Origin: Azolla caroliniana
Lineage: Eukaryota > Plantae > Polypodiophyta
DNA: 64,000 bases
Direction of reading: 5' to 3'
Assembly: GCA_043228905.1 (NCBI GenBank)
Contig: JBHGNT010000013.1
Location: forward strand, 13,578,001-13,642,000
Position 1 is the stretch's first letter. Every line of letters starts with the position of its first letter. The position numbers were made by a program, and so were the translations under genes. The notes below the pieces were generated by a model, which saw only the letters and a list, made by a program, of their open reading frames with translations, did not search any database and had not been told where the DNA came from. Shown here piece by piece: positions 1-41,579 of this stretch.

Positions 1-641
1 TAATTATCTCGACAACGTAGGTCTTGAGAAAACGGGGAAGCGGGCAAGTCTAGCGAACGAGAAAGAGTAAGAGAGTCACGCGTAGACACAGACACGGACA
101 AAGACACTGAGAACCAAGTATGTTAGGTAGCAAGAGTTCTATTAAAACACAGGTGCACAGTGCTGTGAGCGGTTACAGCCGGATCAGAGCCGGTGATGGA
201 GCACGGAGCTTTGGCAAACAGCCAGGTACAAAGAGACGTCGGTGCGCAGAAGGTCGATCCCTGGGTCGGGAGCACTCTGGCGTCTGACGCGAGGAGGGGA
301 AGCGCCTTCTTCCTCGGTCAGTCCTCGGACGTTCTTTGTCTATCCTTTCCTCTAGATGGCATTCTGAAAGACAGTCAAAGGTCGCCCCTTTTATAGCACA
401 AGGAGCGACCGTTACAAGCATTCATGACCCATCACTTTTTCGTCCTAGATTCTCTCCTCGTAACTCCCCCTACTTATGCGATGTCTATATATTCTTTAAT
501 GCTTTAACTACCTAGTACCCCTCCTTATACTCATGGTTAGTAGTTATCTTATTTAATTCCCCTCGAGGCGTGCACTCGCATATACTGATATTCCTGTGCG
601 TTTCACCTTGTTTCCGCTTATGGCCCGGAATCTTCACAACA
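1..641 (-). mobile_element. LTR (partial, runs off the window), same family as the solo LTRs at 5231 and 29707
   Basis: Minus strand begins TGTTGTGAAGATTCCGGGCC, similar to TGTCGTGAAGGATTCCGGCC (5231) and TGTCGTGAAGAATTTCGGCC (30478, minus). Shares the CCTTGTxCTATAAAAGG TATA block. Flank ACGG at 642-645. Interrupts a gag-protease ORF. Confidence 0.7.
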
Positions 642-1039
642 ACGGGAGATCCATTGATATACCCTTTTGCACATAGTAAATCATTGGGACCCAAGACATA
701 GTGAGGGAAAGAAGATTGATAATTACTTAAATGATGTGTATAGACTTGAAGGACATTAGGAATCTGACCTTTATGGTCTACAGCTTTAGCTTTGTTGTCG
801 TGCTTTTTTCGTTGGAGCTTTCGACATTGTTCTTTTGTATGACCCTTCTTTTTGTAGAATACGCAAAAAGGATGTTGTCGCTTACAATCGCGATCCATGA
901 ATTCGTTGGGTGTCTTGCGTTTCCCAATGAATTGCGACTGCTTAGTCCCGGGCGCTTCATTGGGTTTGTTGTGGTCCTTCTTCGAAGTGCGTTGACTATG
1001 GGACTTAGCCAACAGGAAGGTCATTCGGAGTTGAGACAT
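642..1039 (-). pseudogene. Ty3/Gypsy gag C-terminus (degenerate zinc knuckle) and start of protease
   Basis: CVFYKKKGHTKEQC is a degenerate CX2CX4HX4C. It is followed by LLCAKGYINGSPVV, like the segment preceding the retropepsin D-S/T-G motif, and is cut by the LTR. Confidence 0.6.
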
Positions 1040-1359
1040 TGTCTTTTGTTGATCATACGATCGTCGACAAGGAGTGCGAATGGTGTATCATCGGTGCACG
1101 GCTTAGAGAGCATGAGAGAGAGAGAGAGAGAGAGAGATTAAACCTTGATAACTTCAATTACTATAGGGATTAAAACTTCAATATAACTAAAATATCTAAA
1201 AATATAATGAGAAAGGGAGAGAGGGCTAGTCATTAAGTATTAATTAAAAAGACTAAATCAAATGTTACTAACATGTTAAGAGAGAGAGAGAGAGAGAGTG
1301 ATTAAGAGCAAAGCTATTACTAATTATCATTAAGATTGAAAAAGAAATTACATGGGGAT

Positions 1360-1418
1360 ATGGTCATGAGCAAACTAGTTTCGCCCACTACAGGGCTCAT
1401 CAGTGCTAAAATGACCAT
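1360..1418 (-). ncRNA. Type I hammerhead ribozyme (minimal helix III)
   Basis: Minus strand: AUGGUCAU-uuu-AGCA CUGAUGA GCCC-uguagu-GGGC GAAAC UA GUU UGCU-c-AUGACCAU. Intact core, helix II, palindromic helix III and helix I. Confidence 0.85.
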
Positions 1419-2373
1419 TAGGGGTGGATAGGTTTATATAAGGAGTTTTAGGAGAGGGTTTAGAGAAATGACAATAGGGAGTGGGGGTGTGTGCTTATGG
1501 ATATGATTTGAAAAGGGGAAGATTTGGAGAAGAAGGAAAAGGATATTATGAGCCTATAATGTTAAGATTATAGACCTTACGGTCGGAACAAGGAGTGCAA
1601 AATGGGGGGTCATTGGTGGGTAGAGGTTGGAGAAGATGTTAGAGAGGAGGAATACCAAGGTCGATTGGAGTGCACATGAATCGTGAAAGTGCTTGGTGTA
1701 GAGGAGGAAGGCGAGAGTGGGGATAGAAGATTAAGTTTAGGATTAAAACTAAAATTAAAAAAATGAGATTAAAGAACATAATTAAAAAATGGGAGTAAAG
1801 AACATAATTAAAAAACCGAGAGGGGAGAGAATTAACATGCTAAGGCTAAACATAAACACTAATGAAAACAATTAACACATAAAACTAACCCTAAAAATAA
1901 AATAAAAATAAAAAACTAAAAACGTAATCATAAAACTAGAAACATAAACCTAAAATAAGGTAAAGGGAGGGTAGTGGGTGAGAGAGGGGGAGAGAAAGAT
2001 TAAAACATTAAAACATAGTTATGTCCAAGATTAAGAATAAAAACAAGTTTAAAAACATAGTTAAACATTAAAAGGAGGGGTAGGGGAGACGAGGGGATTA
2101 ACATACTAATTAAAAACAAAATTAAAAGGGAGAGAGAGAGAGATAGAGAGAGAGATTAAAACATTAAAACATAATTAATTCCAAGATTAAGAATAAAAAA
2201 CGAGTTTAAAAACCTAGTTAAACATTAAAAAGAGGGGTAGGGGAGACAAGGGGATTAACATACTAATTAAAAACAAAATTGAAAACTAATTAAGAGAGAG
2301 AGAGAGAGAAACATAACTAAAACATGTAATTATCATTGGACAAAAATTACATGGGGTTTGGGGGTGTTAGGGT

Positions 2374-2434
2374 ATGGTCTTATGGCAAACTAGTTTCGCC
2401 CATGAAGGGCTCATCAGTGCCAACAAAAGACCAT
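2374..2434 (-). ncRNA. Type I hammerhead ribozyme (minimal helix III)
   Basis: Minus strand: AUGGUCUU-uugu-UGGCA CUGAUGA GCCC-uucau-GGGC GAAAC UA GUU UGCCA-u-AAGACCAU. Stem changes are compensatory relative to the 1360 copy. Confidence 0.85.
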
Positions 2435-4075
2435 GAGGGTGAGGGAGGGGATTTATATAAGATTTTAGGAGAGGGGTAGAGTGAGGGAGTGGGGGGTAGC
2501 TATGTGCATATGTGCACATTAAGGAAGGAAAGGTAGTGGGATGTAAGGTTTAAGGTTTTCTAAAGATAGGGAAAAGGGAAATGGGAATGGTAAGTACTAA
2601 GAGGGAAGGAGTGAGAGGGTATGGGAAAGAGTGTAGGGAGAAAGTAAGAGAGAGAGGAAAGGGATGTGTACATGCCCATGTTGAAAGAAGGAGAGGTAAA
2701 ATTGTTAAAAGATAGGGAAAAGGGAGTGGTGACGTGGGCACACTGTGGGGTTAAAAAGTAAGAGAGAGGGGGAAAGTTAGAGATTTAAGAGAGATGAGGG
2801 GTAGGGATAAAGTATTGGTTTAGATGAGGGGAGGGCTAGAGATAAAAATATGGAAAGGAGGGGGGGTTTAGGAGGGTAATTTCAAAGGTGAGGTTAGGGG
2901 TGGTAGGTGGGTATTAAACCAAAAGGTAATGGGAGGGGTAGGGTGGTAATTTTGAAAAGTAGAGGGAGGGCTAGAGAGTTAAATTTATGAAAAATGTAGG
3001 GGTGAGAGGGTAATATGGCAAAAATGAAGATAGGGGTACTGTGAGAATATAAAAAGTAAAGGGAGGGTATGGATGTAAATTTGGAAGGGGTAAGTTGGGA
3101 AAGTGAGGGGAGGGTAGGATGGAAATAAAATAAAAATAAAAGTAAAAAAGAGGGATGGAAACATTACAATGTCGGCTACCAAAGGTGTAGTCCCGAGCAT
3201 GATCCTAAGTGTGAGAAGGGAGATAAAAATAAAATGAAAACACGGATCCATAATGTAGTCTCGTGTGTTACAATGAGAGGTAAGTGAAGGGGATGTCGGG
3301 GAGTGTGACATGTAGAAATCGATGACGCCATTTCCAATGCCATGTAACGTTTTACGGGGGCACTCGGCACGACCGAGGGCTCGGTGGTCGCTAATGCTTC
3401 ACTCGATGTGGGTGCCTATCCCCGATACATGGGCCTCCATAGAAGAAACGAAGTTATGATTATAGACCTTGCGGTCGGAACAAGGAGTGTGAAATGGGGG
3501 GTCATCGGTGGGTAGAGGTTGGAGAAGATGTCAGAGAGGAAGAACACCAAGGTCGATTGGAGCGCACCCGAATCGTGAAAATGCTTGGTGTAGAGGAGGA
3601 AGGCGAGGGTGGGGATAGAAGATTAAGTTTAGGATTAAAACTAAAATTAAAAAAACGAGATTAAAGAACATAATTAAAAAACGGGAGTAAAGAACATAAT
3701 TAAAAAACCGAGAGGGGAGAGGATTAACATGCTAAGGCTAAACATAAACACTAATGAAAATAATTAACACATAAAACTAACCCTAAAAATAAAATAAAAA
3801 TAAAAAACTAAAAATGTAATCATAAAACTAGAAACATAAACCTAAAATAAGGTAAAGGGAGGGTAGTGGGTGAGAGAGGAGGAGAGAGAGATTAAAACAT
3901 TAAAACATAGTTATGTCCAAGATTAAGAATAAAAACGAGTTTAAAAACATAGTTAAACATTAAAAAGAGGGGTAGGAGAGACGAGGGGATTAACATACTA
4001 ATTAAAAACAAAATTAAAAACTAATTAAAAGAGAGAGAGAGAGAGAGAGAGAAACATAACTAAAACATGTAAGAC

Positions 4076-6480
4076 AGGAGTGGATTTTGATGAGATGTTT
4101 GCCCTGGTAGTGAAGATGACATCCATCCAGACATTGTTGAGCATAGTGGCAAGCATGGACGTCGAGGTTGGCAATGGTGACCTCGAGGAGGAGATCTACA
4201 TGCAACAACCGGAAGGATTTATCAAGAAAGGGAAGGAGAACCTAGTGTGCCGGTTGAAGAAGAGCTTATACGGAATGAAGCAAGCTCCTTGGTAATGGTA
4301 TCAAAAGTTCGACTCCTTGATGATCGACCAAGGATACTAGAAGACGCAAGTTGAGCACTACGTGCTCGTGAAGAAATTCGACCATATCAAAATACTCTTG
4401 CTATACGTGGATGCCATGTTGATCGTTAAGTGAGACCATATCAAAATCGAGATCCTGAAGAAAGCCTTGAGTAGGTCCTTCTCAATGAAAGATATGGGTC
4501 CATCGAGACAGATCTTAGGGATGCACATAGTCTGGGGCCAAACAAAGAAGCTAGTGTGGTTGTCACAAGAAAAGTACGTGACTAAGGTGCTCCAAAGGTT
4601 CAACATGACGGATGCGAAGTCGGCCGGGTCGACACTCTCGACAAACTACAAGCTGTCCAAAAAGCAAAGTCTGAAAACAAAGACGGAGAAAGCTGAGATG
4701 ATGAAGATACCTTATGCCTCAATAGTCAAAAGCCTAATGTATGCAATGGTGTTTACCCGACTGGAAATCGGAGTGGTCAGCTAGTTCATGAGCAATCCGG
4801 GAAGAGAGCATTGGGCTGCTGTCAAGTGGATCCTCCGGTACCTAAAAGACACCTCGAGCATGTGCCTCTAATTCGGCTAAGGTAAACCTCTATTGGAAGG
4901 CTTTACTGATTCAGACGTGTCGGATGATGTAGATACCAACCGGCAATCGACGTTGCAAAAATCGGTGGCACTATCGACAACAGAACCGTAGTACATGGCG
5001 GCAGTAGACGTCGGCAAAGAAGTAATCTTGATGAAGGACTTCATCGGAGAGTTAGGGATCCAACATGAGGAATTCCGGCTCTACTGTGACAATCAAAGTG
5101 TCATCCACCTTGCGAAGAACGCGACCTACCACTCCCGGACCAAGTGCATCCCGAGGAGATATCACTGACTCTGAGAGAAGGTAGTAGACAAAGACTTTTC
5201 GCTGATGAAGATCCACACAGAGGAGAACGGTGTCGTGAAGGATTCCGGCCAGAGGAAGAAAATGAGGTTGGGTCTGCGTGAACAGGGGTATCCACGAATG
5301 CACAAAGAAATTTGTCTTTATGTACAAAGGTGTGTAAATAGCATAGGACTAATAGGTACTAGTTAGTGTGATTCGATGGGTACTTTAATGTCCCATGGAA
5401 GTAAGGATTAAAAGATATGGTGTGTGAGAGAATCAAGGGGGAATCGCTGATAGAAACAGCTATCATTAAGCGTGATGTAACAGCCTCCCCTTGTTCTATA
5501 AAAGGGGAGGCTTTGGACTGTGCTAGGGATCCACGATCTTGGAGAACGAAATGATGCCGGACAGAGCTCTATAAGCTTCCTTCTTATTCTCTATTTTCCG
5601 GTTTCCTATTGTGGCACTGCGAAGCCTCCGTTCCATGCTGGTAGCCAATGTGCTCCCGATCGAAAGCTCACTAGTGTCTGCGTGTGTGTAAGTGTTGGGA
5701 GCTCATAGCTCCTTTGTTGGTCGTGTCCGGTTGTAATCTTCTCTGTTTTCTTTGTTAGCCATTACTATTTACTGAGTCTCCGGAAACCGATCTGGCAAAG
5801 TTATCCGGAAATCGATCCAGACACCCTTTCTTTTCTCATCGGCCCCTTGGTCCGAGACCCCGGTGGTCCCGCCCCGTTTCAACACATACCAGCGGAATAC
5901 CACGACAACATGTTAGACATGTTGACCAATGCGTTATCAGCTGAGAAGTTGGACATGTTTCGGAGACGGATCGGGTTGAAAAGACATCCCATGCCATAGT
6001 GAAGGGGGAGTTGGTTGGGGAAAGGGTCCCTCCGAATGGGATCGGAAGAGTCGGATTGGATGGATCCAGAAGGTATTCGGTGTGAACCAGAAGTAGGGAC
6101 ATGTTAGTAAATATGTTCTGATGGGCCTGTTGAGGCCATATTTGTAAATAACCCTAAAGTTATATAGATATAAATATAACTAGGGAAATATGAAGTTAGT
6201 GTGGTTATAAGTTAGTTATTTTGAGTCGTTACCACGGTATAGAGAGAGAGAGTTTGAGCAGAAGGTCATTGCCTCTATGTCTCCGTTGTATCCTACCTCT
6301 TTTCCATAGTGATCTAGTTCGGAGTCAGTGGACTCCCGTAGTTTTGCCTCTTGAGGTTTTCCACATTAACATATACTGTGTCGACTCATTACCTTGTAAG
6401 TGTATCAATCTCTATTTTTCTTTTCTGTTTCTTCCAAAGTGAGTTTTGAACTCAGTAGTGGCAAAGAGTTATTTCTCACA
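4076..6480 (+). mobile_element. Degenerate Ty1/Copia 3' half (RT-RNase H, PPT, 3' LTR), Tnt1-like
   Basis: GVDFDEMFA, DLEEEIYMQQPEGF, LKKSLYGMKQAP, IPYASIV and YCDNQS motifs with stops and frameshifts. PPT GAAGGGGGAG at 6001-6010. LTR ~6012-6480. Confidence 0.85.
5231..5907 (+). mobile_element. Solo LTR inserted in Copia RNase H
   Basis: TGTCGTG...CACGACA terminal inverted repeat and TATAAAA at ~5496. Flanks ACGG/ACAT; removing the LTR plus 4 bp restores the Copia frame E-N-x-x-D-M-L-T. Confidence 0.75.
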
Positions 6481-6707
6481 CAAAAGATCGACAATAAGTG
6501 GAGCATAGTGTGGTGTGGATAGAACACTAGGTCATTGAAAGGTCCTTGGAAGTTGTGTAAATAATCAAGTGTGTGATTATGTAGTGCAGAAAATAGATTA
6601 AGACATGTTTGTTATGTATGTATATAAGAGAAGTGAGAAGAGAGACTCAATAAAGAAAAGCAGAATACAAACTGTATATTAACAAGAATAAGAATGACAA
6701 CCAACAA

Positions 6708-8340
6708 GAATGACGACCATGTCCAATCCTCACCGAGAATTGGAACTAGAACACGAATACCAACGGGTATGAGCAACCATGTGCGGCCCTCATCGGGAAT
6801 TGGAACACCCACGGGTGTGAGCGACCATTTGCGATGAGGATCAAGTTCCAGTTCCCAACGAGGGCCACACATGGTTGCTCATGTCGTTCGTGTTCCACTT
6901 CTACATGAGGGCTGCATGGTCGCTCACGCTCGTTCATTTTCAGCTCTCGGTGAGGGCCGCATGGTCACTCACATTTGTTCGTGTTCCAGTTCTCGGTGAG
7001 GACTGCATAGTCGCTCACGCCCGTTCGTGTTTTCGATGAGGACCGCACATGGTCGCTCACTCCTGCTATTGTTCGTGTTCCAGATCCCGGCAAGGACCAA
7101 CATGGTCGCTCATGCCCGTTGCTATTCATGTTCCAGTTCCTGGTGAGGGCCACACATGGTTGCTCACGCCCGTTGATGTTCGTGTTCCAACTCTCGGCGA
7201 GGGCCACACATGGTCGCACACTCCCATTCATGTTCCAATCTCTGGTGAGGACCGCACATGGTCGCTAACTCCAGCTATTGTTCGTGTTCCAGATCCCGGC
7301 CAAGACTGACAGGGTCACTCATGCCCACTGTTGTTCATGTTCCAGTTCTCGATGAGGGCCACACATGGTCGCTCATGCCGTTTGTGTTCCAATTCTCGGT
7401 GAGGGCCGCATGGTCGCTCACGCCCGTTCGTTTTTAGTTCTCGATGAGGGCCGCATGGTCGCTCACGTCCATTCACGTTCCAGTTCTCGGTGAGGACTGC
7501 ATGGTTGCTCACGCCCGTTCGTGTTTTCGATGAGGACCACACATGGTTGCTCACTCTAGCTATTGTTCATGTTCCAGATCCTGCCCAGGACCGACATGAT
7601 TGCTCATGCCCGATGTTGTTCATGTTCTAGTTCCTGATGAGGGCCACACATGCTTGCTCACGCTCGTTGATGTTCGTGTTCCAACTCTCGGCGAGGACCA
7701 ACATGGTCTCTCATGTCCGTTGGTGTTTGTGTCCCCTATGAGGACCGCACATGGTCACTCACGCCCGTTGGTATTCGTGTTCCAGTTCCCGACGAGGACC
7801 GACATGGTCGCTCATGCCCGTTGTTGTTCATGTTCCAGTTCTCGGTTAGGACCACACATGGTTGGTCACGCCCGTTGGTGTTCGTGTTCCAACTCTCGTC
7901 GAGGATTGACATGGTCTCTAATGCCCGTTGGTGTTCGTGTTCCCCATGAGGACCACACATGGTCACTCACGCCTGTTGGTATTTGTGTTCTACTTCCCGA
8001 CAAGGACCGCACATGGTCGGTCACGCCCGTTCGTGATCCAATTCTAGTTCTCGGTGAGGACCGCATGGTCGCTCATGTCCGTTCGTGTTCGGGTTCTTGG
8101 TGAGGCCCGGAGATGGTCGCTCACGCCCGTGGGTGTTCCAGTTCCCGGTGAGGGCCACACATGGTTCCTCATACCCGTTGGTATTCGTGTTCTAGTTCTA
8201 GTTCCCAGCAAGGACAACACATGATCACTCACGCTTGTTTGTGTTCCAGTTCGAGTTCCTGGTGAGGATTGGACATGGTCGCTCACGTTTGTCGGTGTTC
8301 TAGTCTCCGGTGAGGACAACATATGGTTCCTCAGTGCTCC
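6708..8340 (+). repeat. Degenerate tandem array of ~30+ units of ~40-60 nt in the 3' internal region of a Gypsy element
   Basis: Unit consensus GAGGRCCRCACATGGTCGCTCACGCCCGTT(GGTGTT)CGTGTTCCAGTTCTCGGT. Plus-strand ORFs read repeated EDRTWSLTPVGIRVPVP. Confidence 0.9.
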
Positions 8341-10805: not shown

Positions 10806-12410
10806 CTACACAATGTTGTAGGGCATAGGAGAATACTGCATCACTAGAAAATTGAAGGTGGTGGGAGAACCTAGGGAGAGGCCTTTGGGAACAAAGGTGA
10901 AAACTAGGGACGACTCCGATGTGAGGTTGAGGGCACGAATCCGTCCACCGACATGGAACCTGAAGTCACTCGAATTCCCAACTTCGGTAAATTGTGCTGC
11001 ACTGTGGAAGGTGCCCACGAATTCCTCGCATCTGGAGCTTGTGTTCGCGGTGGCAGACGGAAGGTTCAAAAAGACATCTAGAATGGCCGACATGCCCTCG
11101 GTCCATGTCAATCCGGCCATTATCAGATTCTCCTCCTCTGCCCCTTGTGCCACCGCCGCCATGTCTCGCTTCACCGTGGCGGAGCACGGGGCGACGATCC
11201 ACTCCCCCGCCTCGCACAACTTGTCCGAGGTTCTTAATTCCGCCACTCCGTCACTAAGCCTCACCGGCACTCCTTGGACCATCCATGGGACATCCACCTC
11301 CTCATACACATACCCTAAGTTCCTTGTGTCCAATGCATCCCTCACCCTCACCCTCACGAGCTCCGCGTCCTCGTTGTAGAACGCAAACTCGGCATCCAAA
11401 TACTCGGCCTCGTCGATGTCCTCGTTCCCTTCCATGTCCTTCCAGAGCACCCACATTCGGTCGAGCTCCGCGTGGTGCGCATAGAACGCCGGATCCCTAG
11501 CAGCCGCGTAAAGCGACCCCATGTCTTTCCTCCCGACCGCGGTCACCGAACCCGCCCACATATGCACCGAGTTGTGGGGGAACTCCTCCACTGTCCCATA
11601 GAGGATCCTGGGAACCTCTCCATGCTTGAACGGATAACCGAAGAATCTATATTTGCTCTCTGCATCCCTAACGAGGGACCTGTACACGTACGCCGCGTTC
11701 TCGTGGAGTTGTTCCTCCGTGGACCGTGTTTCGGAATTGTAGGTGTAGTCGATGGAGACCAGCGTGGGTGGCATGTGATCAGGATTCCTAAGGTCATCCA
11801 TGAGGACGGGGTATTGGATGTACATCCATGGCATAGTGGAGCCATTGGGATGGTCATAGTTCCAGAAGGGAAGTGAGAACGTGTCATCATCGAGGAGCTT
11901 GGCCAGGATCCTCTCGTGGAAGTAGAGGTACCACCTATGGAAGGGGAAGAAGAGCCAGTTTCCATGGACTTGGAAGAGGAGGTCGGTAGAGTTGTTTTGG
12001 TTATAGACTGTGTTGCAATAAGCACAATGGATGTTTGCTTGTTGGGCAAAGGAGCGAGGGTCTTCGGGGGGTAGGTCCTTCATGAGGGAGTAAGCTCTAG
12101 CAAGTGTGTCTCCATAGGTGGCATTGGGGAGGTGGGCTGGCCTTCTGACCTTGAGGGTAGGATAAAGGGTTGGGTTGGGTGTGAAGAGGGGTAAGGGTGT
12201 TGTTGTAGCTGGGGGAGGGGCACAACAATTCAAAATCTCGAGTTCTAATGCGGGGATGTCTGATGGGGCATTGCAACTAGTCATGTTTGGGGACAAGACT
12301 GTGCATTGTGCTCGTATTATGAGGTTAGAATTGTGAAGACCATAATTAGTGTTATACATAAGAATGATGATGAAGGTGGACAAGACGAAGAAGCACATGG
12401 GCTTCCTCAT
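10806..12410 (-). CDS. PPO: Polyphenol oxidase (type-3 copper catechol oxidase/tyrosinase), 534 aa, intronless, N-terminal hydrophobic signal/anchor
   Basis: CuA: HCAYC...HGNWLFFPFHRWYLYFHERIL. CuB: PHNSVH...DMGSLYAAARDPAFYAHH. LPFWNYDHP; DWL-like LDTRNLGYVYEEVDVPW; KFDV-like ILDVFLN...EFVGTF. The ATG at 12410 (MRKPMCFFVLSTFIIILMY) is conserved in the paralog at 34673. Confidence 0.95.
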   Translation of the reverse strand: MRKPMCFFVLSTFIIILMYNTNYGLHNSNLIIRAQCTVLSPNMTSCNAPSDIPALELEILNCCAPPPATTTPLPLFTPNPTLYPTLKVRRPAHLPNATYGDTLARAYSLMKDLPPEDPRSFAQQANIHCAYCNTVYNQNNSTDLLFQVHGNWLFFPFHRWYLYFHERILAKLLDDDTFSLPFWNYDHPNGSTMPWMYIQYPVLMDDLRNPDHMPPTLVSIDYTYNSETRSTEEQLHENAAYVYRSLVRDAESKYRFFGYPFKHGEVPRILYGTVEEFPHNSVHMWAGSVTAVGRKDMGSLYAAARDPAFYAHHAELDRMWVLWKDMEGNEDIDEAEYLDAEFAFYNEDAELVRVRVRDALDTRNLGYVYEEVDVPWMVQGVPVRLSDGVAELRTSDKLCEAGEWIVAPCSATVKRDMAAVAQGAEEENLIMAGLTWTEGMSAILDVFLNLPSATANTSSRCEEFVGTFHSAAQFTEVGNSSDFRFHVGGRIRALNLTSESSLVFTFVPKGLSLGSPTTFNFLVMQYSPMPYNIV

Positions 12411-12913
12411 TGTCGTAAAAATTGAAGCACATCCCTTCTTTGTTATGGGTTTGTGATTGTTATATACAGAATTGAGATCCTGCTTATTGAAGAGAGAGAG
12501 AGAGAAAGAGAGAGAGCATGCTTGTCCTTGTAAATATGACACACAATGCACATCAACGTTTCCATGTCCTTTCTTTGCCTTTATGAGTTTTGGAAGTGAG
12601 AAAGTCAAGAAATTGTTTAAGGTTGTGTTCTCTAATTTAAGATTAATCGACAAGTTTTGTTGAAACACGATTCATTTGGTCTTTCTTTACTGAAGTTAAT
12701 GGTTTTAATTGGGTGGAATTTTATGTCTTTGTCGTTTTCTTTCTCTTTTTTCCAAAAAATGTTGTCAGTTCTTTTTTTTTTTCCAAAAAGAAATGTTGTC
12801 AGTTCTTTTTTTTTTTCCAAAAAAATGTTGTCATTTCTCTTATTTACCTCTCCTTTTTCAATAAAGCAATAAAAGAATATTACTCTTAAATCCTAAAGTT
12901 TTTACTTCCCCAT

Positions 12914-15094: not shown

Positions 15095-15239
15095 TTGCCC
15101 ATTATGATTGTAAACTTATACAATAAACACACATATTGGTCTCTTTTATTGAAATTAATAGTTTTAATTGGGTGGAATTTAATGTTGTTGTTGTTTTCTT
15201 TTCTCTCTCTCCCCTTTCTTCTTTTTCCCTCTTCCTTTT

Positions 15240-15930
15240 TTTAAAGTTCCCCTCTCACTAGTTCTATACATCCCTTACTCTCCCTTTTTGTTTCCCATTT
15301 CTTCCTCTATTGTTTGTTACTTTTTCACCCCCTTAAATTTTTCTAAACACCCACTATTACCCCTTCACATTAAACCTTCTCCCCCTCATTATATTTCCCC
15401 TTATTATATAGCCTTCTCTTCTCTCCTTCCCCATTTCCAATCATACCCATTACCACACCTCCACTCCCCACTCCTTATTCTCATTTTTCTAAAGCCTCTC
15501 CTAAACTTCACTATATAAACACCATCAACCCCCAAAGGCCACTTAGTGCTAATGAGCCCTATAGGGGGCGAAACTAGTTTGCTCGTGGCCATTCGCATTT
15601 CCCCTATCTCATTGTAAACCGTATCTTAATGAAGATTAATCTCTCTCTCTTAGTTTTGTTTAATCTCTCTCTCTTTCTCAAGCTCATGGGTATGTTTTAA
15701 TCTTATTTAGTGTTTTATTGGTATGTAGAGTTTAATTTTTAGTATTTTGATCCCTTATCTCCCTCTCCCCTCCCTCTATCTCTTCTAATCGTCGCCTACA
15801 CCAAGCTTTGTTTACGATTCGGGTGCGCTCAAATCGATCTTGGTGGTCTCGTCTCCCTCTCAACTTATCTACAACCCACCGATGATTTCCCCGTTCCGCA
15901 CTCCTTGTACCGGCCGTAAGGTCAACATAA
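15240..15930 (+). mobile_element. Penelope-like hammerhead-bearing repeat fragment
   Basis: Reverse-complement homolog of the 1050-4075 family: pyrimidine-rich tract, TATATAAA at ~15512, hammerhead, CT tract, CACTCCTTGTACCGGCCGTAAGGTC motif. Confidence 0.65.
15537..15590 (+). ncRNA. Hammerhead ribozyme, probably inactive (G5A core change)
   Basis: GGCCAC-uu-AGUG CUAAUGA GCCC-uauagg-GGGC GAAAC UA GUU UGCU-c-GUGGCC. Confidence 0.7.
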
Positions 15931-17039
15931 ATAAATGTTGTCGGTTCTCTTATGCACCTCTCCTTTTTCAATAAAACAATAAAAGAATAGTACTCTTAAA
16001 TCCTAAAGTCTTCACTTCCCCATTATGATCGTAAACTTATACAATAAACACACATACGCACACACACATACATCCGGAACCACATATAGGTAAACGTGTA
16101 CACACATGTAACCGTATATTATACATAAATATTATATATATATATATATTCAATTTACAAACAAGTACATATATACATGTAATACACTTATTGAGACATA
16201 AACTAGAGTAAACATATAATATAGACACTTAATACATTATTTATACTCTCCCTTAGACAATAACACACAATTACATGTATACAATCATGTGAATACCTAT
16301 GAGCATATACAACCAAACACATTTAAACAAGCATATTCCAAAAACATGAGCACACATGTTCGAATCTTACGTGTCTATTGTAAATGCGTTAGATTTGAAC
16401 ATATTCCAGTGCATATGTTCTAGAACGAGGTCACTTTACTCATTGAAGGATTCTCTTGCACACCGAAAGGGTGCCTACAAGTGAACCTACGATGGTCAAG
16501 ATGGACAAGTTTAACCACATTCCATAACAAAATTCATCTTCGACATTGCCATCTTCCCGAGTTCAAGTTCCCAATATTGTCATTGAATTTTTCACACTCG
16601 CGTGTAATTTCACGATAATGATTCATATCAGGCAAGTGTTGTGAATCTCTAAGAGCCACCACCCATCATTGTTGTGATACTTGGTAAGCATTATTGCGAT
16701 GATTTGAGGCACCGCATCAAGGACTTGGTTAAGGTTGAATGGAGTTCGGTTGTGTAGGAAGTAGATTGTTATTTGAATGTCTTCTACCAAGGATGAGAAC
16801 TCATTGGATGCTTCACCTTCAAACTTAGTCCTCTTACACAATACATTGGACCATAGGAAATATTGGAGAAAGAGGTTGGAGATATTGGTGCAAAGATCCT
16901 AAACTCCGATGTAAGCTTACAAGCTAAAATGTGTCATCTATTCCTTCTTTTCTACCCCTTAGGTTGCTAAACACATGTCTACTTCAATGACGGTGGGCGA
17001 GAAACCTTTCCCCCATATTGCATATCTTATCTGAGGTAC

Positions 17040-18247: not shown

Positions 18248-19518
18248 CTAACGTATTGTTGTGGGACATAGGAGGATACTGCATCACTAGAAAATTGAAG
18301 GTGGTGGGAGAACCTAGGGAGAGGCCTTTGGGAACAAAGGTGAAGACTAGGGATGACTCCGATGTGAGGTTGAGGGCACGAATCCGTCCACCGACATGGA
18401 GCCTGAAGCCACTCGAATTCCTGCCTTCACTAAATTGTGGTGCATTGTGGAAGGTGCCCACGAATTCCTCGCATCCGGAGGTTGTGTTCGCGATGGCAGA
18501 CGGAAGGTTCAAAAAGACATTTAGAATGGTCGACATGCCATCGGTCCATGTCAATTCGGCCATTATTAGATTCTCCTCCTATACCCCTTGTGCCACCGCC
18601 GCCATATCTCGCTCCATCGTGGCGGACCACGGGGTGATAATCCACTCCCCCGCCTCGCACAACTTGTCTGAGCTTTTTAATTCCGCCACTCCGTAGCTAA
18701 GCCTCACCGGCACTCCGTCGCTAAGCCTCAACGGGACTCCTTGGACCATCCATGGGACATCCACCTCCTCATACACATACCCTAAGTTCCTTGTGTTCAA
18801 TGCATCCCTCTCCCTCACCCTCACGAGCTCCGCGTCCTAGTTGTAGATCGCAAACTCGGCATCCAAATACTCGGCCTTGTCGATGTCCTCGTTCCCTTCC
18901 ATGTCCTTCCAGAGCACCCACATCCGGTCGAGCTCCGCGTGGTGCACGTAGAACACCGGATCCCTAGCGGCCGCGTAAAGCGACCCCATGTCTTTCCCCT
19001 TGACCGTGGTCGCCAAACCCGATTACACATGCATCGAGTTGTGGGGGAACTCCTCCACTGTCCCATAGAGGGTCCTGGGAGCCTCTCCATGCTTGAATGG
19101 ATAACAGAAGAATCTATACTTGCTCTCTGCATCCCTAATGAGGGACCTGTACACGTACGTCGTGTTCTCGTGGAGTTGTTCCTCCGTGGACCGTGTTTTG
19201 GCATTGTAGGTGCAGTCCATGGTGACCACCATGGGTGGCATGTGATCAGGATTCCTATAGTTATCCATGAGGATGGGGTATTGGGTGTACATCCATGGCA
19301 TGGTGGAGCTATTGGGATGGTCATAGTTCCAGAAGGGGAGCGGGAAAGTGTCATCATCTAGGAGCTTGGCCAGGATCCTCTCGTGGCAGTAGAGGTACCA
19401 TCAATGGAAGGGGAAGAAGAGCCAGTTCCCGCGGACTTGGAAGAGGAGGTCGGTAGAGTTGTTTTGGTTATAGACTGTGTTGGAATAAGCACAATGGATG
19501 TTTGCTTGTTGGGCGAAG
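18248..19518 (-). pseudogene. PPO pseudogene, 3' part
   Basis: High similarity to 10806-12050, with in-frame stops, a 2-nt deletion near 18876, an altered CuB region and a 24-nt duplication (PxRLSxGV repeated). Confidence 0.93.
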
Positions 19519-20559: not shown

Positions 20560-21611
20560 ATATATTTACATAAGGGTATTATCAATTATGCTGGAAAAAA
20601 TAAATTATATAAGCCCATGAAATATTAGATATTTCAATGAGATAGTAAAGAATATATTATGCATGCATATATGTTACATTCAAACATTACATCCGTGAAT
20701 ATGTATATACATACATTGCACCCATTTATACATGTATTTTGACTAAACATAAATATATGTACAAATATATCTTACCATATGTAAATATGTACATACACAT
20801 ACGTATATACATTACATACTACATACATAAAAATGACATATTAGATATATACATACATATTCTTACAAACATATTTTATATATTACATATTACACACATA
20901 TATTGTTATACACACAATTTTTATACAAATGCATACATATATACATTCCAAACACAAAAAAATAAATTACATAATATATATATACACATACACATGCATA
21001 AATTAATTCCTAATATTACTTATAGTTATTATATGCATACAAATCTTCATACATACATACAAACAAGTTACATATATATATATATACATACATGCACACA
21101 CACGCACACGCACACGCACACACATAAATAAAATAGATATTGCGTATCATATATGATATAACCATAGTTATTACACAATATACAAATTTACATACACATA
21201 CATACATAAATTACATGTATAAATATATAGATACATGCATAGATATATTACAGATTTACATATATACATACATACACACACATTAGATATATCATATATG
21301 TATACTTACATATACATCGGATATATATACATGCATATTACGTACATATTACAAACATATATCCATATATGAGCCATATACATACTAAACATGAAAAATA
21401 TCCCAAAAATATACGTACAGATATACACATCCATACATTCATACACGTACATACATATCACCATACACACACACATACACATATATACATACATTAGATA
21501 TATAGATACATATTATACACATATTACAAACACATCCATACACATTGAATCATGAATATTGACATATACATATATGCATACACATATATACATTACATAT
21601 TCCACATATCA

Positions 21612-21659
<48 letters not shown>

Positions 21660-22589
21660 GTACATATGTCTGTAACGATGTTATAAGTTTTACAAACATA
21701 CATCTATACACATATATACATACATTCCATACATGCATACACATACTTATGTTACATTTGTATATTACATACACATATATATCATCACAAACTACAATAC
21801 GTACATATATACATACACATACATATATAAATACATTACATATGCATATATGCATACACATATGTACATTCGTACATGGACATACATGTGTTCATTTATA
21901 CATTGCTACATATACATACACATACATACATTATATGTAGAGATATTATGCAGATATTACAATCACACATTCATACACATTGAATCATGTACATTTAAAT
22001 ATGCATATATACATAGACATACATACATACATTACATATGCATATACATATGTACATTCGTACATGGACATACATATATTCATTTATACATTGCTACATG
22101 TACATAAACATACATACATTAGATATACATACAAATACATACATGCATGTAGACATTAGATATATATACATACATATTACAAACAAACATCCACACACAC
22201 ATGTATGCATATATGCATACACATACAAACATGCATACATTACGTATTACATACATACATATGTTCATTCACATGTGCACATGCATAAATATACCTAAAA
22301 CATCCTATTACATTCTATCATCCATTTACCTAAAACATCTTCAAGAATCTTATCCTTGATTGTTTCAATTGGGGATGTATCTTTACAATTGTCCTTGGTT
22401 TCACACATGTACGTATTGTGTTGTATATATGTGCATGTGGATGATCGAATGTAATATTCCTATACATATGCACATGTATAGAACATACGCACACAGATAG
22501 CACCTACATACACACACACATGTGATACATACATACATACATACATACATACATACATACATACATACATACATACATACATACATACA

Positions 22590-22620
<31 letters not shown>

Positions 22621-22969
22621 GCACATATAATACATACCCACATACATGTGCACATATATAGAACATACACACACATACCACATAGACACATTATACATAC
22701 TCACATGCCATACATACAATATATACAACACATGCAATTCAATACATACATACATACATATACATATGCCATACATACAATGAATATATACAATAATGCA
22801 TTTAATACAATATGGTACAATGCAATACAATATGTACATAGATGCATACACACATCCATACATACACACAACACATACATATATATGCATGCAATACAAT
22901 ACATATGCATATATATAGAACACATACACACGTGCTATACATACAATACATGCTTAAGCACATGTATAG

Positions 22970-23009
<40 letters not shown>

Positions 23010-23400
23010 ATATAACACATATATATACATAAATACACACATGCCATACATACAACCATGCAATACAAAACATACATATGCACATAATAGGACAAACACA
23101 CAAACACACAAGCACATAACATATAACCTACATACTCACATGCCATACAATATGTACATACATACACACATGCCATACATACAATATATACAATACAAGA
23201 TGTACTTATATACAACATACACACATGCCATACATACAATATATACAATACAATATGTACATATATACAACATACACACATGCCATACATACATATGCAA
23301 TTGTATAGGCCATACACACACACACACACACACAGGGAGAATATACATACATATCCACATGCATAAACACACACACACATGTATAGAACATACACAAGCT
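20560..23400. repeat. Degenerate (CATA)n/(TA)n/(CA)n low-complexity tract
   Basis: Perfect (CATA)n at ~22528-22617, (TA)n at ~21614-21658, (CA)n at ~22972-23007. Confidence 0.95.
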
Positions 23401-34312: not shown

Positions 34313-34673
34313 CAAAGGAACAAGGGTCATCGGGGGGTAGGTCCTTCATGAGGGAGTAATCTCTAACAAGTGTGTCTCCATAGGTGGCATTGGGAAGGTG
34401 GGCTGGCCTTCGACCCTTGAGGGTAGGATAAAGTGTTGGGTTGGGTGTGAAGAGGGGCAAGGGTGCTGTAGTTGGGGGAGGGGCACAACAATTCAAAATT
34501 TTGAGTTCTAATGCGGGGATTTCTGATGGGGCATTGCAACTAGTGATGTTTGGGGACAAGATTGTGCATTGTGCTCGTATTATGAGGTTAGAATTGTGAA
34601 GACCATAATTAGTGTTATACATAAGAATGATGATGAAGGTGGACGAGACGAAAAAGCACATGGGCTTCCTCAT
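34313..34673 (-). pseudogene. PPO pseudogene, 5' part
   Basis: MRKPMCFFVSSTFIIILMY...MKDLPPDDPCSF joins FAQQANIHC at 19518 across the Copia TSD. Confidence 0.93.
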
Positions 34674-34750
34674 TGTGGTAAAAATTGAATCACATCCCTT
34701 TTTTGTTATGTGTTTGTGCTTGTTATAAAGAGAATGAGATCCTACTTATT

Positions 34751-34792
<42 letters not shown>

Positions 34793-35705
34793 CATGCTTG
34801 TCCTTGTAGATATATCGTGTGTGTGTCTTCACGCTTCACCAAAAATATTGAATTTATGACACACAATGCACATCAACGTTTCCATGTCCTTTCTTTGCCT
34901 TTATGAGTTTTGGAAGTGAGAAAATAAGGAAATTGTATAGGGTTGTGTTCTCTAATTTAAGATTAATCGACAAGTTTTGTTGAAACACGATTCATTTGGT
35001 ATTCCTTTACTGAAATTAATGGTTTTAGTTGGGTGGAATTTTATGTCGTTGTCGTTTTCTTTTTCTTTTTCTTTTTTCCAAAAATTGTTGTAAGTTTTTT
35101 TTTTTCCCCAAAAAAAATGTTGTCAGTTCTTTTTTTTGTCCCCAAAAAAAATGTTGTCCGTTCTTTTAATTTTCCAAAAAAAATGTTGGCAGTTCTCTTA
35201 TGCATCTCACCTATTTCAATAAACCAATAAAAGAATATTACTCTTCAGTCCTAAAGTTTTCACTTCCCCATTATGATCGTAAACTTATACAATAAACACA
35301 TATATTGGTCTCTTTTACTGAAATTAATAGTTTTAATCGGGTGGAATTTTATGTCATTGTTGTTTTCTTTTCTCTCTCTCCACTTTCTTCTTTTTCGCTC
35401 TTCCTTTTTTTAAAGTTCCCCTCTCACTAGTTCTATACCTCCCTTACTCTCCCCTTTTAATTCCCATTTCTTCCTCTATTGTTTGTTACCTTTTCACCCC
35501 CTTAGATTTTTCTAAACACCCACTATTACCCCTTCACATTAAACCTTCTCCCCCTCATTATATTTCCCCTTATTATAGAGTCTTCTCTTCTCTCTTTCCC
35601 CATTTCCAATCATACCCATTACCACACCTCCACTCCCCACTCCTTATTCTCATTTTTCTAAAGCCTCTCCTAAACTTCACTATATAAACACCATCAACCC
35701 CCAAA

Positions 35706-35759
35706 GGCCACTTAATGCTAATGAGCCCCGTAGGGGGCGAAACTAGTTTGCTTGTGGCC
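35706..35759 (+). ncRNA. Hammerhead ribozyme, probably inactive (G5A), in the duplicated Penelope-like fragment (~35410-35931 + 41714-41870)
   Basis: GGCCAC-uu-AAUG CUAAUGA GCCCC-guag-GGGGC GAAAC UA GUU UGCU-u-GUGGCC. Confidence 0.65.
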
Positions 35760-36221
35760 ATTCGCATTTCCCCTATCTCATTGTAAACCCTATCCTAATG
35801 AAGATTAGTTTTGTTTAATCTCTCTCTCTTTCTCAAGGTCATGGGTATGTTTTAATCTTATTTAGTGTTTTATTGGTATGTAGAGTTTAATTTTTAGTAT
35901 TTTGATCCCTTATCTCCCTCTCCCCTCCCTCTGTCATAACTAGACTCGAACCCATAACCTTTTGTTACACGGGTCGAGACTTTACCATTAGGTTATGAAT
36001 TGTAATTTGAAGGATATTATTTTCATTTAGGTTTTATTGGGAAATTGATGTATATTCCAGATTTCTCTGGAACATTCTAGAAACTTCAGGAGTATTCCTG
36101 AAGACACTATAAAAGGAGGCGCAAGGCATTAGTTCGAACCAAATCGGTTCAACGCCAGTCTTAAGCCTTCTAACTACTGTTGTATATCTTCCTTCATATA
36201 ATACATATATCTTTCGCATCA

Positions 36222-36267
<46 letters not shown>

Positions 36268-36503
36268 ACTCATTCCTTCTCTCAAAAGTTCGACACCTCT
36301 CATAGTACTAATCCTTCTCTGTCTTAGTACTATTCCCCAACAATAGTACTAATCCTTCTTTTAGTACTAATTCCTTCTCTGCCTTAATAGAGTTCCTGAC
36401 AGTTTGAACCGATTTTTTGGGTGCCTGTCTGGTCTTTTCTCTCCCTCTTCCTTCTGTCTCCCTCCTTTCCTGCTAGTCTCTTATTTCCCTTTTCCTTCAT
36501 CCC

Positions 36504-37673
36504 ATGGCCACCGTTAGCGCTGAAGAGTATCAATCCGTTTTCTCGGAATTTCAATGCTTGAAAGAGAAGTTTCATGCTTTGGAACAAGAAAATCAACGCT
36601 TGTTGGGGGATCTTCAGCAAATTTCCTTAGAAAAGCAGCAAACGCAACAACAGCATGGGGAACTTGCGTTACGCGTGCAACAACTCGAAGCAACCATCGT
36701 AGCAATGCAACAACAAGGGCACGGAGCACAAGGGATTCATAAAGAACCCAAGATTGGCCTTCCCACGAAGTTCGATGGAACGCGATCGCAGTTTAGAGGG
36801 TTTCTTAACCAGGTACGGTTAGTTATTCAAATGCATCCGTCCCGATATCCCACCGATGCATCACGAGTGGGTTTAGTAGGCACGTTGTTAAATGGCTCAG
36901 CATTAGCATGGTTCGCTCCGCTACTAGAAAAGGAATCTCCAGTACTAAATAATTTTGAAGAATTCATAAGTGAGTTTAAAGCATGTTTTGGAGATACTGA
37001 CAGCATAAGGACTGCAATCAACAAAATCCGGCGATTACGCCAAGGTGACCGTCCAGCCTCCGCATATGCTGCAGATTTCCGCCTACTCGCCGCCGATATC
37101 CCCTGGGATGATCAAGCATTGATGGAGCAGTTCCGCTATGGTCTACGCAACGATGTCAAGGATTTACTCTTGACTTTCCCTGAAGAGCCAAAATCATTAA
37201 CAGAAGCAATCAGTCGAGCGGTAAGATGTGACAACCGCCTCTTCGAGCGACGTTCGGAACGACAATTTCAGATGCCGAGGGCAAGATCCGAGCCTACCTA
37301 TGCCTTAGTGGTAGCAAAACCTTTTCAAAGGGAGTCACATAATGCGCCTCCAGTAAGTACTCCAACTCCAATGGAAATTGACACTACACGTCGTCGTGGG
37401 CCGCTATCGGAGGAGGAAAAGCAACGACGCCGAACAAACCGATTATGCCTTTATTGCGGTGGACCAGGGCATATCGCGATAAACTGTCCCCATAGACCAA
37501 GAAGGCAGGTAAACCAAGTCGTTGTTAGTTCTGACTATACTAAACCCGAGTCTATTTCAGTAGGAATCTCTGATAGTCCTCATAGTCATAATAGTCCTAA
37601 TAGTACTAATAGTCCGAATCTCGCAAACAAATTTGATGTCCTTAGCCAATTAGAAGAAGAGTTAAACGACTAA
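36504..37673 (+). CDS. gag: Gag (coiled coil, capsid, zinc knuckle)
   Basis: PTKFDGTRSQFRGF, LRQGDRPASAYAADF, PTPMEID, CLYCGGPGHIAINC. Confidence 0.93.
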   Translation: MATVSAEEYQSVFSEFQCLKEKFHALEQENQRLLGDLQQISLEKQQTQQQHGELALRVQQLEATIVAMQQQGHGAQGIHKEPKIGLPTKFDGTRSQFRGFLNQVRLVIQMHPSRYPTDASRVGLVGTLLNGSALAWFAPLLEKESPVLNNFEEFISEFKACFGDTDSIRTAINKIRRLRQGDRPASAYAADFRLLAADIPWDDQALMEQFRYGLRNDVKDLLLTFPEEPKSLTEAISRAVRCDNRLFERRSERQFQMPRARSEPTYALVVAKPFQRESHNAPPVSTPTPMEIDTTRRRGPLSEEEKQRRRTNRLCLYCGGPGHIAINCPHRPRRQVNQVVVSSDYTKPESISVGISDSPHSHNSPNSTNSPNLANKFDVLSQLEEELND

Positions 37674-40600
37674 GTCCAGCCAAAATAGGAGCCGTTTGGT
37701 TGGACAGCCCTAGATCTGTGCAGCCCATTAGTGGTTCCATTCCCTCTAAGCAAGTTAGTGATGTGTTCGTAGCCCAAGTAGCAGTTAGTACTAAAAGTAC
37801 CCCTCCAGTACATACCTTAGCCCTTCTAGATTCCGGAGCTAATTCTTGCTTCATGGATAGGAATTTTGCCCGAGCTCATCAGATATCTCTCAGAAAGCTC
37901 CCATGTCCAGCCTCAGTAGTAGTCATTGATGGTCGTCCCATTGCTTCTGGTAATATCATAGAAGAGTCGGAACCCGTTAATATTGTCCTAGATAACTTAA
38001 CATGTGTAGTATCATTTAATATTATTAGTATTCCAGAACATCCCATAGTTTTAGGATTACCATGGTTCGAGTTACATAACCCAGACATAGATTGGAGGAC
38101 AAGGGAAATCCGGTTGCGACAAACCCAAGGATCTACCCAGAAGGTTGCAACCATTTCGCTACATCAGTTGCGTGAGGAAGGGCGCAAGGAGGAAATGTTT
38201 CTCTTCGCAATATCAGTACAACCCTCCAGCACCACCAAAGAGGAGTCCACCGTTCAACTTCCCGAGAAGTATCGTCAGTATGCTGATGTGTTCGATAAAG
38301 TACAAGCCAACACACTTCCTCATCATCGGCCGTACGATTGCGCCATCGACTTACAACCGGGAAAAGAGCCGCCATGGGGGCCGATCTACAATTTGTCACC
38401 AACCGAGCTAGAAGTCCTCCGAGCCTATATAGAGGAGAATTTGGAGAACGGTTTCATTCGGCATTCGAAATCTCCAGCCGGTGCACCCATTTTCTTCGTC
38501 AAGAAAAAAGATGGCTCGCTTCGACTCGTTGTAGATTACCGTGGCTTGAATAAGGTCACAGTAAGAAATAGGTATGCTCTTCCCCTTATCTCAAGTCTTT
38601 TAGAACGGATCAACGGTGCCAGGTTCTTCACGAAGATCGACTTACGAGGAGCCTATAACCTCGTACGGATCCGACCAGGAGATGAATGGAAGACCGCGTT
38701 TCGCACCAGATATGGGCACTTCGAGTATACGGTCATGCCGTTCGGACTCACTAATGTGCCGGCAGTCTTCCAGCACATGGCGAATGATATATTTCGAGAT
38801 CTCTTGGATGATTTTTTGATCATCTATTTGGATGATCTACTGGTTTATTCAAAGACCCAAGAAGAACATGATTCTCATGTACTATTAGTACTAAAACGAC
38901 TTCGAGAACATGGTCTGTATGCAAAGTTAGAGAAATGTAGTTTCGGGTGCAACCAAGTGGAATTTCTCGGCTATGTCATCTCCTCAGAAGGCATATCTAT
39001 GGACCCAGCCAAGGTGAAAACGGTGATAGAATGGCACACTCCGCGTTCGGTGCGGGATGTGCAATGCTTCCTAGGCTTTGCAAATTTTTACCGGAAGTTC
39101 ATACAAAATTACTCAAAAATTGTGCTGCCTCTCACACAGCTCACCAAGAAGGGACAATCATTCATTTGGTCTAAAGAGACGGACATGGCTTTCGAGAGTC
39201 TTAAGAAGGCGTTTACATCAGCTCCAATTTTAGGTCATGTGGATCCGGAAAAACCATTCATTATCGAAGCTGACGCATCGGATTTCGCATTGGGGAGCAT
39301 TCTGTCACAACAGGGTAACGACGAGAAGCTACATCCTGTGGCTTTCCACTCCCGTAAGTTTGACGCCGCCGAAATCAACTACGAAATTCATGATAAAGAG
39401 CTATTAGCAATAGTTGATTCTTTTATGCAATGGAGGCATTTCCTGGAGGGATCTCCTCATCAGGTCACTGTATTCAGTGACCACAAGAACCTTGCCTACT
39501 TTCAAGATGCTCGTGTACTGAATCGACGTCAAGCTCGGTGGGCCCACTTCCTCACACGCTTCGACTTCAAAATTACATATCGTCCGGGGAAGCACCAAGG
39601 GAAGGCAGATGCATTATCACGGCGTTCGTATCTAACACCACGTCCCGGTGAGCCAGCTTTCGATAACCAGAAGCAAGTAATCTTGGGTCCAGCACGACTG
39701 CAAGCAGCACAAGTCTTTGACATGCCCGTGGATTCCGACATTACCAATACTATACGTGAGGACTTGAAGACTGACGCTTTCGCCCAAGCTATACTAGCAC
39801 AAATTGACCCCTCTCGAGCGTCATGTTCACAATCACAATCACCAGGTACGGATTATCGGCAATTCAAATACTGTGATGGATTACTCTTCTTTAAAGAACT
39901 TTTGTATGTTCCTAATGGTTCTTGCCGCCTTCGAGTAGTACAAAATTGCCATGACACATATACAGCAGGACATTTTGGTAGTACTAAAACATTAGATTTA
40001 GTACAACGATCATTCTGCTGGCCCCGTATGCGACAATTTGTCGAAGATTTTGTTCGGACTTGCGATACATGCTGCAGAGCGAAAATGCCAAGACATCATC
40101 CATATGGTTTATTAGAACCATTACCAATTCCAAGCAAGCCATGGCAATCCATTGCTCTTGACTTCATTACAGATCTTCCAGTCTCTAAGGGATTCAGTGC
40201 GATTCTCACAGTGGTGGATCGATATACGAAGATGCCTCATTTCTTACCATGTACTAAAGAAATATCTAGTGAAGACACCGCCGAAATTGTCATGCGGGAA
40301 GTATGTCGGCATCATGGACTCCCTGATAATATCATCAGCGATCGTGGACCCCAGTTTGTGTCAAAATTCTGGAAGCACCTTTTTAAAATGCTGAAGGTCA
40401 CTTGTAACCTCTCCTCCGGCTACCACCCACAAACCGACGGTCAAGCCGAACGAACAAATCAAACACTGGAGCAGTATCTGCGGTGCTTTCTCAACTATCA
40501 TCAGAATGACTGGGCAGATATTCTTCAGTTCGCCGAATTTGCCTATAATAACACTATCCACGCATCGACTAAAGTCACGCCATTCTACGCTTATACGGGA

Positions 40601-41257: not shown

Positions 41258-41539
41258 CTAGACTCGAACCCATAACCTTTTGTTACACGGGTCGAGACTT
41301 TACCATTAGGTTATGAATTGTAATTTGAAGGATATTATTTTCATTTAGGTTTTATTGGGAAATTGATGTATATTCCAGATTTCTCTGGAACATTCTAGAA
41401 ACTTCAGGAGTATTCCTGAAGACACTATAAAAGGAGGCGCAAGGCATTAGTTCGAACCAAATCGGTTCAACGCCAGTCTTAAGCCTTCTAACTACTGTTG
41501 TATATCTTCCTTCATATAATACATATATCTTTCGCATCA

Positions 41540-41579
<40 letters not shown>

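Follow-up and report, generated by a model that had tools for sequence, protein, structure and literature searches.

Putative protein-less Penelope-like elements with covarying type-I hammerhead motifs in the fern Azolla caroliniana

Results

The array and the solo copies

The window analysed here, a 64,000-nt stretch of the Azolla caroliniana genome, contains three related units, X, A and B, that self-comparison places head to tail in that order on the minus strand, and two further copies, 3 and 4, on the plus strand (Table 1; loci outside the window bear L numbers). A preliminary description made from the letters of the window had given the family a head-to-tail layout. This holds for X, A and B, which form a partial tandem with a 5'-truncated upstream member, but not for copies 3 and 4, which are solo and lie inside a segmental duplication. 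In a full unit, a CT-rich region and then a TATATAA box precede the hammerhead, and a body that is AT-rich and includes (CT)n leads on to a conserved terminal block. In unit A this series is preceded by a decayed ORF1 start, whose DNA and first residues align with the ORF1 start in L027 and L029, two loci of an autonomous element described below, and the terminal block of unit A aligns with the block preceding ORF1 in that element. Unit B ends in a shortened terminal block (about 1045-1100), and its joint at 1044 recurs in other genomic copies.

Table 1. Features of the hammerhead-bearing family in the window
Feature	Position	Strand	Remarks
Unit X	3453-4070	-	5'-truncated; body and terminal block only, without hammerhead; 94% identical to unit A body
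Terminal block, unit X	3453-3593
Unit A	1562-3452	-	1.89 kb; L018 is 87-92% alike along the whole unit
ORF1-start remnant, unit A	3300-3440	-	ATG at 3440, stop at codon 14
TATATAA box, unit A	2453-2459	-	42 nt before core C3
Hammerhead A	2374-2434	-	type I, intact core; predicted cleavage after U17, between 2388 and 2387
Terminal block, unit A	1562-1701	-	core GCACTCCTTGT, ...GGTC... end plus about 10-15 nt
Unit B	1045-1561	-	other subfamily; 5'-truncated relative to L001-type copies
TATATAA box, unit B	1434-1440	-	37 nt before core C3
Hammerhead B	1360-1418	-	type I, intact core; predicted cleavage between 1373 and 1372
Copy 3 (solo)	15202-15937	+	735 bp; hammerhead 15535-15592; same two ends as L017 and L019
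TATATAA box, copy 3	15512-15518	+
Terminal block, copy 3	15796-15937
Copy 4	35371-41878	+	hammerhead 35704-35761; TATATAA box in the place equivalent to that of copy 3; segmental duplicate of copy 3
Terminal block, copy 4	41738-41878

The absence of a reverse transcriptase (RT) from the units, as first described, was borne out: tblastn of the ORF1 and RT of the autonomous partner against the window gave no match, and the window holds no Penelope-type ORF. The units are not small retrozyme monomers but internally deleted or truncated copies of 0.5-1.9 kb that belong to different subfamilies, which separates them from non-LTR retrozymes.

Solo copies of the third sequence group (copy 3, L017 and L019) have two ends in common, and three independent insertion ends fall at the terminal block, immediately ahead of where ORF1 begins. 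The pre-insertion state of the copy 3 site is preserved in empty paralogous units (12677-12910 and 35003-35268). Judged from these, the element went in where a T/C-rich stretch meets AAATGTTGTC, without a clear duplication. A 37-bp direct repeat around copy 3 was considered as a target-site duplication and rejected, as it is a host tandem repeat (15101-15136, 16021-16057). Neither a target-site duplication nor the precise 5' end of the elements could be established.

Several other features share the region. The two flanks of the array belong to different elements, with a gag-like ORF (512-1039) and an LTR-like end in window positions 1-1044 (minus strand) and a copia RT fragment (4071-5230) on the other side. 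Among named proteins, those closest to the product of a polyphenol oxidase gene (10806-12668, minus strand) come from the ferns Ceratopteris and Adiantum (47-49% identity), which points to a fern host at some distance from these two; partial paralogues of the gene lie at 18257-19518 and 34313-35271 in the segmentally duplicated region. Two chromovirus copies (Ty3-type, with a chromodomain) at about 35931-41713 and 57126-62902 are 99% identical to each other, and their LTR pairs are 98.5-99.6% identical, as in young insertions; the first of them splits copy 4, the inserted stretch being 35936-41713.

With a query of 3,201 nt, 774 and 939 contigs from DNA runs of two plant taxa matched the region. 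The family is multi-copy in at least two plant taxa. In some of these contigs a B-type end (1044) runs straight into an ORF1-type start (3444), which is the junction of the autonomous element.

Structure of the hammerhead motifs

Hammerheads A and B, which are 1,015 nt apart, lie where the preliminary description had put two minus-strand motifs with an intact core, and both a pattern search and alignment to a Rfam model agree on their placement. Read 5' to 3', each opens with helix I, whose distal part (8 bp) and proximal part (4-5 bp) are separated by a bulge of 3-4 nt. CUGAUGA comes next, followed by helix II (GCCC/GGGC, 4 bp with a 5-6-nt loop) and GAAA, and then by a 2-bp helix III (AC/GU) closing a UA loop, U17 and the 3' strands of helix I. 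The two base pairs of helix III lie inside a 6-nt palindrome (ACUAGU). Both motifs have all invariant positions (C3 U4 G5 A6 N7 G8 A9 and G12 A13 A14), the A15.1-U16.1 and G10.1-C11.1 pairs, and an H17 other than G (here U). The helix I pairs given earlier were also right, with AGCA/UGCU in one copy and UGGCA/UGCCA in the other, and GGUCAU/AUGACC, GGUCUU/AAGACC and, in copies 3 and 4, GGCCAC/GUGGCC; the upstream TATATAA box is likewise present in all four copies. The cleavage triplet, GUU, obeys the NUH rule and is slower than GUC in standard constructs. It had been remarked on as less usual than GUC or GUA; it is a fixed trait of these families rather than an oddity of two copies.

The pattern CTGATGAG-N8-30-CGAAAC has 2 matches in 64 kb, against 0.01 expected by chance. 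At gathering thresholds Rfam gave no match in the window. With E-value reporting, Hammerhead_HH9 (RF02275) aligned end to end with both motifs in type-I topology, so the Infernal search suggested beforehand did yield a full-length alignment, but at 22.9 bits for A and 20.8 bits for B it stayed below the gathering score of 52, a deficit that we attribute to the very short helix III. Our own covariance model scored hammerhead A at 59.1 bits and, run over the whole window with filters off, found four copies only (A, B, 3 and 4). Compared with 200 shuffles, the folds of A and B had z scores of -3.49 and -3.75, and both were better than all 200. Strings of the form CUGAUGA...GAAA at 17255, 39439 and 60625 were rejected, as they do not fit the hammerhead model. 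Dozens of sub-threshold matches to mir-297, mir-466 and mir-3149 (20700-23400) were discarded as low-complexity artefacts of long TG/TA microsatellites.

Copies 3 and 4 read CUAAUGA, the invariant G5 being changed to A at 15551 and 35720, respectively. Their distal helix (GGCCAC/GUGGCC) is kept, and proximal helix I is down to wobble pairs or mismatches. These copies are decayed and are not intact ribozymes. Relatives of both with an intact core exist at L004 and L017.

Covariation and conservation

A scan of metagenome contigs in which the core, helix II and helix III were fixed and helix I was left free returned 25 loci, mostly from one assembly series and from plant DNA 83-98% like the window copies. 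They comprise B-like loci, A-like loci, a third group made up of the intact-core relatives of copies 3 and 4, and the unrelated L023 and L024, whose helix I sequences are quite different and still paired. A covariance model was built from four B-type sequences and all matches were aligned to it; two MAFFT alignments (A2 and A3) that misplaced distal helix I or the bulges were dropped in its favour. The covariance-model alignment leans towards the model, and the pairs are nonetheless plain in the raw sequences.

In this first set, where helix II is invariant by design of the search, 97.2% of the cells were paired and 10 of the 12 helix I pairs had changed on both sides; none of 500 shuffles did as well, and sliding the partners left 31-41% paired. 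The hammerhead of the autonomous element, found by the model and not by the pattern, has GCUC/GAGC as helix II, a compensatory change from C-G to U-A. With this element included, 96.6% of the cells were paired and 11 of 16 pairs showed double changes, one of them in helix II (0/500 shuffles as good; 32-41% paired with slid partners). The covarying stems reported at the outset are thus substantiated. Helix III is invariant across the main families. Between A and B, identity is 84% in the hammerhead and 59-63% in the flanks (150 nt on each side). A chance match to the hammerhead motif is excluded by the pattern expectation and the pair counts, and the hammerhead appears to be under clear purifying and compensatory selection.

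A second family is represented at L010 (4703-4758, minus strand), where a hammerhead with the core CUGAAGA and a GUA triplet lies behind an RT fragment. It has ACAUGU in place of ACUAGU; the middle two bases have changed together and the palindrome is kept. Retention of the palindrome, seen in this single case, would be expected if two ribozymes pair through helix III and would not be required of a loop.

Other ribozyme motifs were encountered on an AP72_2010 metagenome contig, L005, which has three, at 30-84, 463-521 and 854-921. They are a Twister-P5 (51.5 bits against a Rfam gathering score of 37.6), a type III hammerhead (38.4 bits) and a further hammerhead with a long helix III and a GUC site.

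An autonomous Penelope-like relative

L024 carries a 724-codon ORF with RT motifs and KPADKxxG, and a TATATAA box and hammerhead follow about 250 nt past its stop. Pfam and PDB sequence searches of this ORF returned nothing useful; a protein atlas placed it, at 0.97, beside rotifer and cnidarian RT clusters (DUF8422, HTH_animal, RVT_1). Sequence search gave RT relatives in Cryptomeria, Ginkgo, Selaginella and Closterium, and more distant ones that add a GIY-YIG domain. By these sequence comparisons the RT family is Penelope-like and its plant members are without the nuclease.

A member of this family, P0022, occurs on six contigs, which belong to the assembly series that also supplied the hammerhead loci. 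They encode an ORF1 of about 805-819 aa and an RT of 627 aa, followed by a CT-rich 3' UTR, TATATAA and a hammerhead 296 nt after the RT stop; then come (CT)n and the GCACTCCTTGT block, and the ATG of the next unit's ORF1 lies about 17 nt beyond that block. Full units of the partner stand in tandem in L027 and L028, and L027 has (CCCTCT)n before the TATA box. On L010, the RT fragment, the second-family hammerhead and a B-type unit lie on one strand. The Penelope-type RTs on L026-L031 and L024 all lack GIY-YIG. The preliminary description had proposed looking for a partner with a Penelope RT and GIY-YIG that shares the termini of the units; an RT partner with the same ends does exist, without GIY-YIG, and was seen on metagenome-derived plant contigs 83-98% like the window copies rather than in this assembly itself. 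At L032, a Selaginella RT locus, neither our own model nor Rfam found a hammerhead within 3 kb.

L021 holds a complete L1-type LINE at 1900-8101, with a 622-aa ORF1 and an ORF2 containing APE endonuclease, RT and zf-RVT. It was considered as a partner of the units and rejected, being adjacent and not related.

Spacing of TATA box and ribozyme

Measured from its first T, the TATA box stands 37-42 nt ahead of core C3 in seven families, including L023, L024 and the autonomous element, and the spacer sequences between box and core are unrelated and unalignable across these seven. The second family on L010 is an exception, with its TATA box 54 nt before the core.

Discussion

We consider it highly probable that the window contains three head-to-tail, protein-less copies (X, A and B) of a fern Penelope-like family and two decayed solo copies. 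The units appear to be ORF-less derivatives of nuclease-less Penelope-like elements, because their layout, their terminal block and the decayed ORF1 start are common with the autonomous element. This, together with the covarying hammerhead, agrees with the non-autonomous Penelope- or retrozyme-type family first proposed. The window copies have no RT and are therefore not full endonuclease-deficient Penelope-like elements, as the partner is; the hammerhead sits in a pseudo-LTR in units and partner alike.

The autonomous relative encodes ORF1 and a telomerase-like RT, and in its tandem arrays the end stretch of the 3' UTR also fronts the next ORF1, as a pseudo-LTR. The units keep only the non-coding ends (and, in A, the decayed ORF1 start), and would therefore have to be copied by the relative's enzyme. 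The hammerhead would cut read-through transcripts of an array after U17. The ribozymes probably act in pairs joined through the ACUAGU palindrome, since helix III alone has only 2 bp, which, by established hammerhead biochemistry and earlier work (PMC4209133, PMC7229834), should be insufficient for a ribozyme acting alone. Partners from the same array transcript or from separate ones could share a 6-bp helix III via ACUAGU. The predicted gain in stability over two monomers is 4.8 kcal/mol for homodimers, and no energy gain is predicted for an A+B heterodimer.

Two routes could produce mixed arrays when the RNA is reverse-transcribed. Within a single event the enzyme may jump between templates, leaving one RNA at its 5' end and resuming at the 3' end of the next, or copies may be added end to end one after another. 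Both would fit the array in the window, because its upstream member is 5'-truncated and A and B are of different subfamilies. The second route has been described for nuclease-less relatives (PMC8557442). An anole element begins reverse transcription at an internal site of the RNA, close to where the ORF starts (PMC11167929). The units could instead be those of a true retrozyme, in which double cleavage yields unit-length RNAs, tRNA ligase closes them into circles and rolling-circle reverse transcription produces tandem DNA, a cycle that has been put forward for the non-LTR retrozymes of animals (PMC7229834). In its favour, the window, L014/L001 and L015/L016/L025 all have tandem units that carry a single hammerhead apiece. 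Nevertheless we regard it as unlikely, as the array mixes two subfamilies (A and B are 59-84% alike), which is impossible for a rolling circle, and the fixed ends of the solo copies lie at the terminal block and not at the cleavage site. Among the assembled contigs covered, no RNA circle junction turned up. Rolling circle alone does not appear to fit the arrays, and we favour template jumping or end-to-end addition by the enzyme of the Penelope-like relative.

The four hammerhead copies of the window may be fossils of a family that once used the ribozyme, at loci no longer transcribed or cut, with the intact cores of A and B reflecting young age only; we find this possible, if somewhat doubtful. 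The inactivating G5-to-A change in copies 3 and 4, the splitting of copy 4 by a chromovirus, the truncation of units X and B and the absence of the stretch from runs on record as RNA all point that way. Against it, no invariant base and no pairing has been lost from A or B, even as the flanks have fallen to 59-63% identity, and a 1,710-nt contig from a run guessed to be RNA covers an A-type copy. That contig spans the body of the preceding unit through the hammerhead, uncut, and shows neither transcription nor cleavage with any certainty.

Two other origins of the units were weighed. It is very improbable that they are SINE-like passengers of an L1-type LINE rather than of a Penelope-like element. 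L021 does have such a LINE, with its APE endonuclease, RT and zf-RVT domains, 1.3 kb past a type-3 copy. That copy, however, stops at the usual terminal block, leaving 1.3 kb to the LINE ORF1, and the units have the terminal block, TATA box, hammerhead and ORF1 start in common with the Penelope-like element instead. Hardly credible at all is a plant LTR retrozyme moved by Ty3/gypsy, or a chance resemblance to a hammerhead: gypsy and copia elements do surround the locus, but no LTR pair flanks the units, the motif is of type I with an open helix I, as opposed to the type III motifs of LTR retrozymes (PMC4918200), and chance is ruled out by the pattern expectation and the covariation counts. Derivation from a nuclease-less Penelope-like element remains our preferred reading.

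Two known systems come closest, the first being the Coprina-type, endonuclease-deficient Penelope-like elements of plants, those of Selaginella moellendorffii (Gladyshev and Arkhipova 2007, as cited in PMC8557442), whose pseudo-LTRs carry type-I hammerheads with a short palindromic helix III that implies dimers (Cervera and de la Pena 2014, PMC4209133). In common with these elements, the fern family has an RT without GIY-YIG (here in the partner) and partial tandems, and the non-coding stretch after the RT holds a canonical type-I hammerhead in which helix I is bulged, helix II has 4 bp and helix III is short and palindromic. It differs in its host, a fern, in that the window copies are ORF-less, and in that they lie in a gene-bearing region rich in transposable elements and not at a telomere. 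The reverse-complement telomeric repeats that typically adjoin the ribozyme in nuclease-less relatives are absent; no telomeric CCCTAAA arrays lie by the fern ribozymes, only a single CCTAAA before the TATA box.

The second system is that of animal non-LTR retrozymes (PMC7229834), which derive from Penelope-like pseudo-LTRs (bioRxiv 10.64898/2026.07.22.740005). The fern units resemble them in being non-coding and head to tail, in their type-I hammerhead with a helix III suggesting dimer action, and in being related by sequence to the non-coding ends of an autonomous Penelope-like element. Unlike these retrozymes, which are uniform monomers of 170-400 nt, the fern units are heterogeneous (0.5-1.9 kb, from different subfamilies), include solo copies with fixed ends and have a plant host. 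Plant LTR retrozymes have type III hammerheads within their LTRs, possess both a primer-binding site and a polypurine tract, and are believed to rely on Gypsy enzymes (PMC4918200). The fern units are, like them, non-autonomous plant retroelements with hammerheads, yet they have no type III motif, LTRs, primer-binding site or polypurine tract. Rfam HH9 has the same type-I topology over its full length, whereas helix III and its loop are much shorter in the fern motif, which scores under half of the gathering value.

The conserved distance between TATA box and ribozyme raises a further idea, which we put forward as improbable. The TATA box may be coupled to the ribozyme. If transcription begins some 30 nt past the box, the usual spacing in plants, transcripts from an element's own promoter would start within the 5' strand of helix I and carry a crippled ribozyme, while read-through transcripts would contain a complete one and be cut. 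Such a start might instead put the promoter-proximal ribozyme at the extreme 5' end of the RNA. A single pseudo-LTR sequence would then be a promoter in the upstream copy and the maker of an RNA end in the downstream copy, an LTR-like U3/R logic built from a ribozyme.

To our knowledge, the ribozyme-bearing non-autonomous elements of plants have so far been LTR retrozymes with type III motifs. Penelope-like elements are held to be rare in plants and are documented mainly in Selaginella (PMC12477314). Judged by their sequence, the fern elements are a real case, in a plant, of an architecture described before in animals and a spikemoss. A fern lineage would have an active-looking nuclease-less Penelope-like family together with abundant ORF-less derivatives at interstitial sites, a plant counterpart to the animal non-LTR retrozymes. 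The family also offers natural variants with which the role of the ribozyme may be tested, among them the copies with G5 changed to A, the helix III changes that preserve the palindrome and the fixed TATA spacing.
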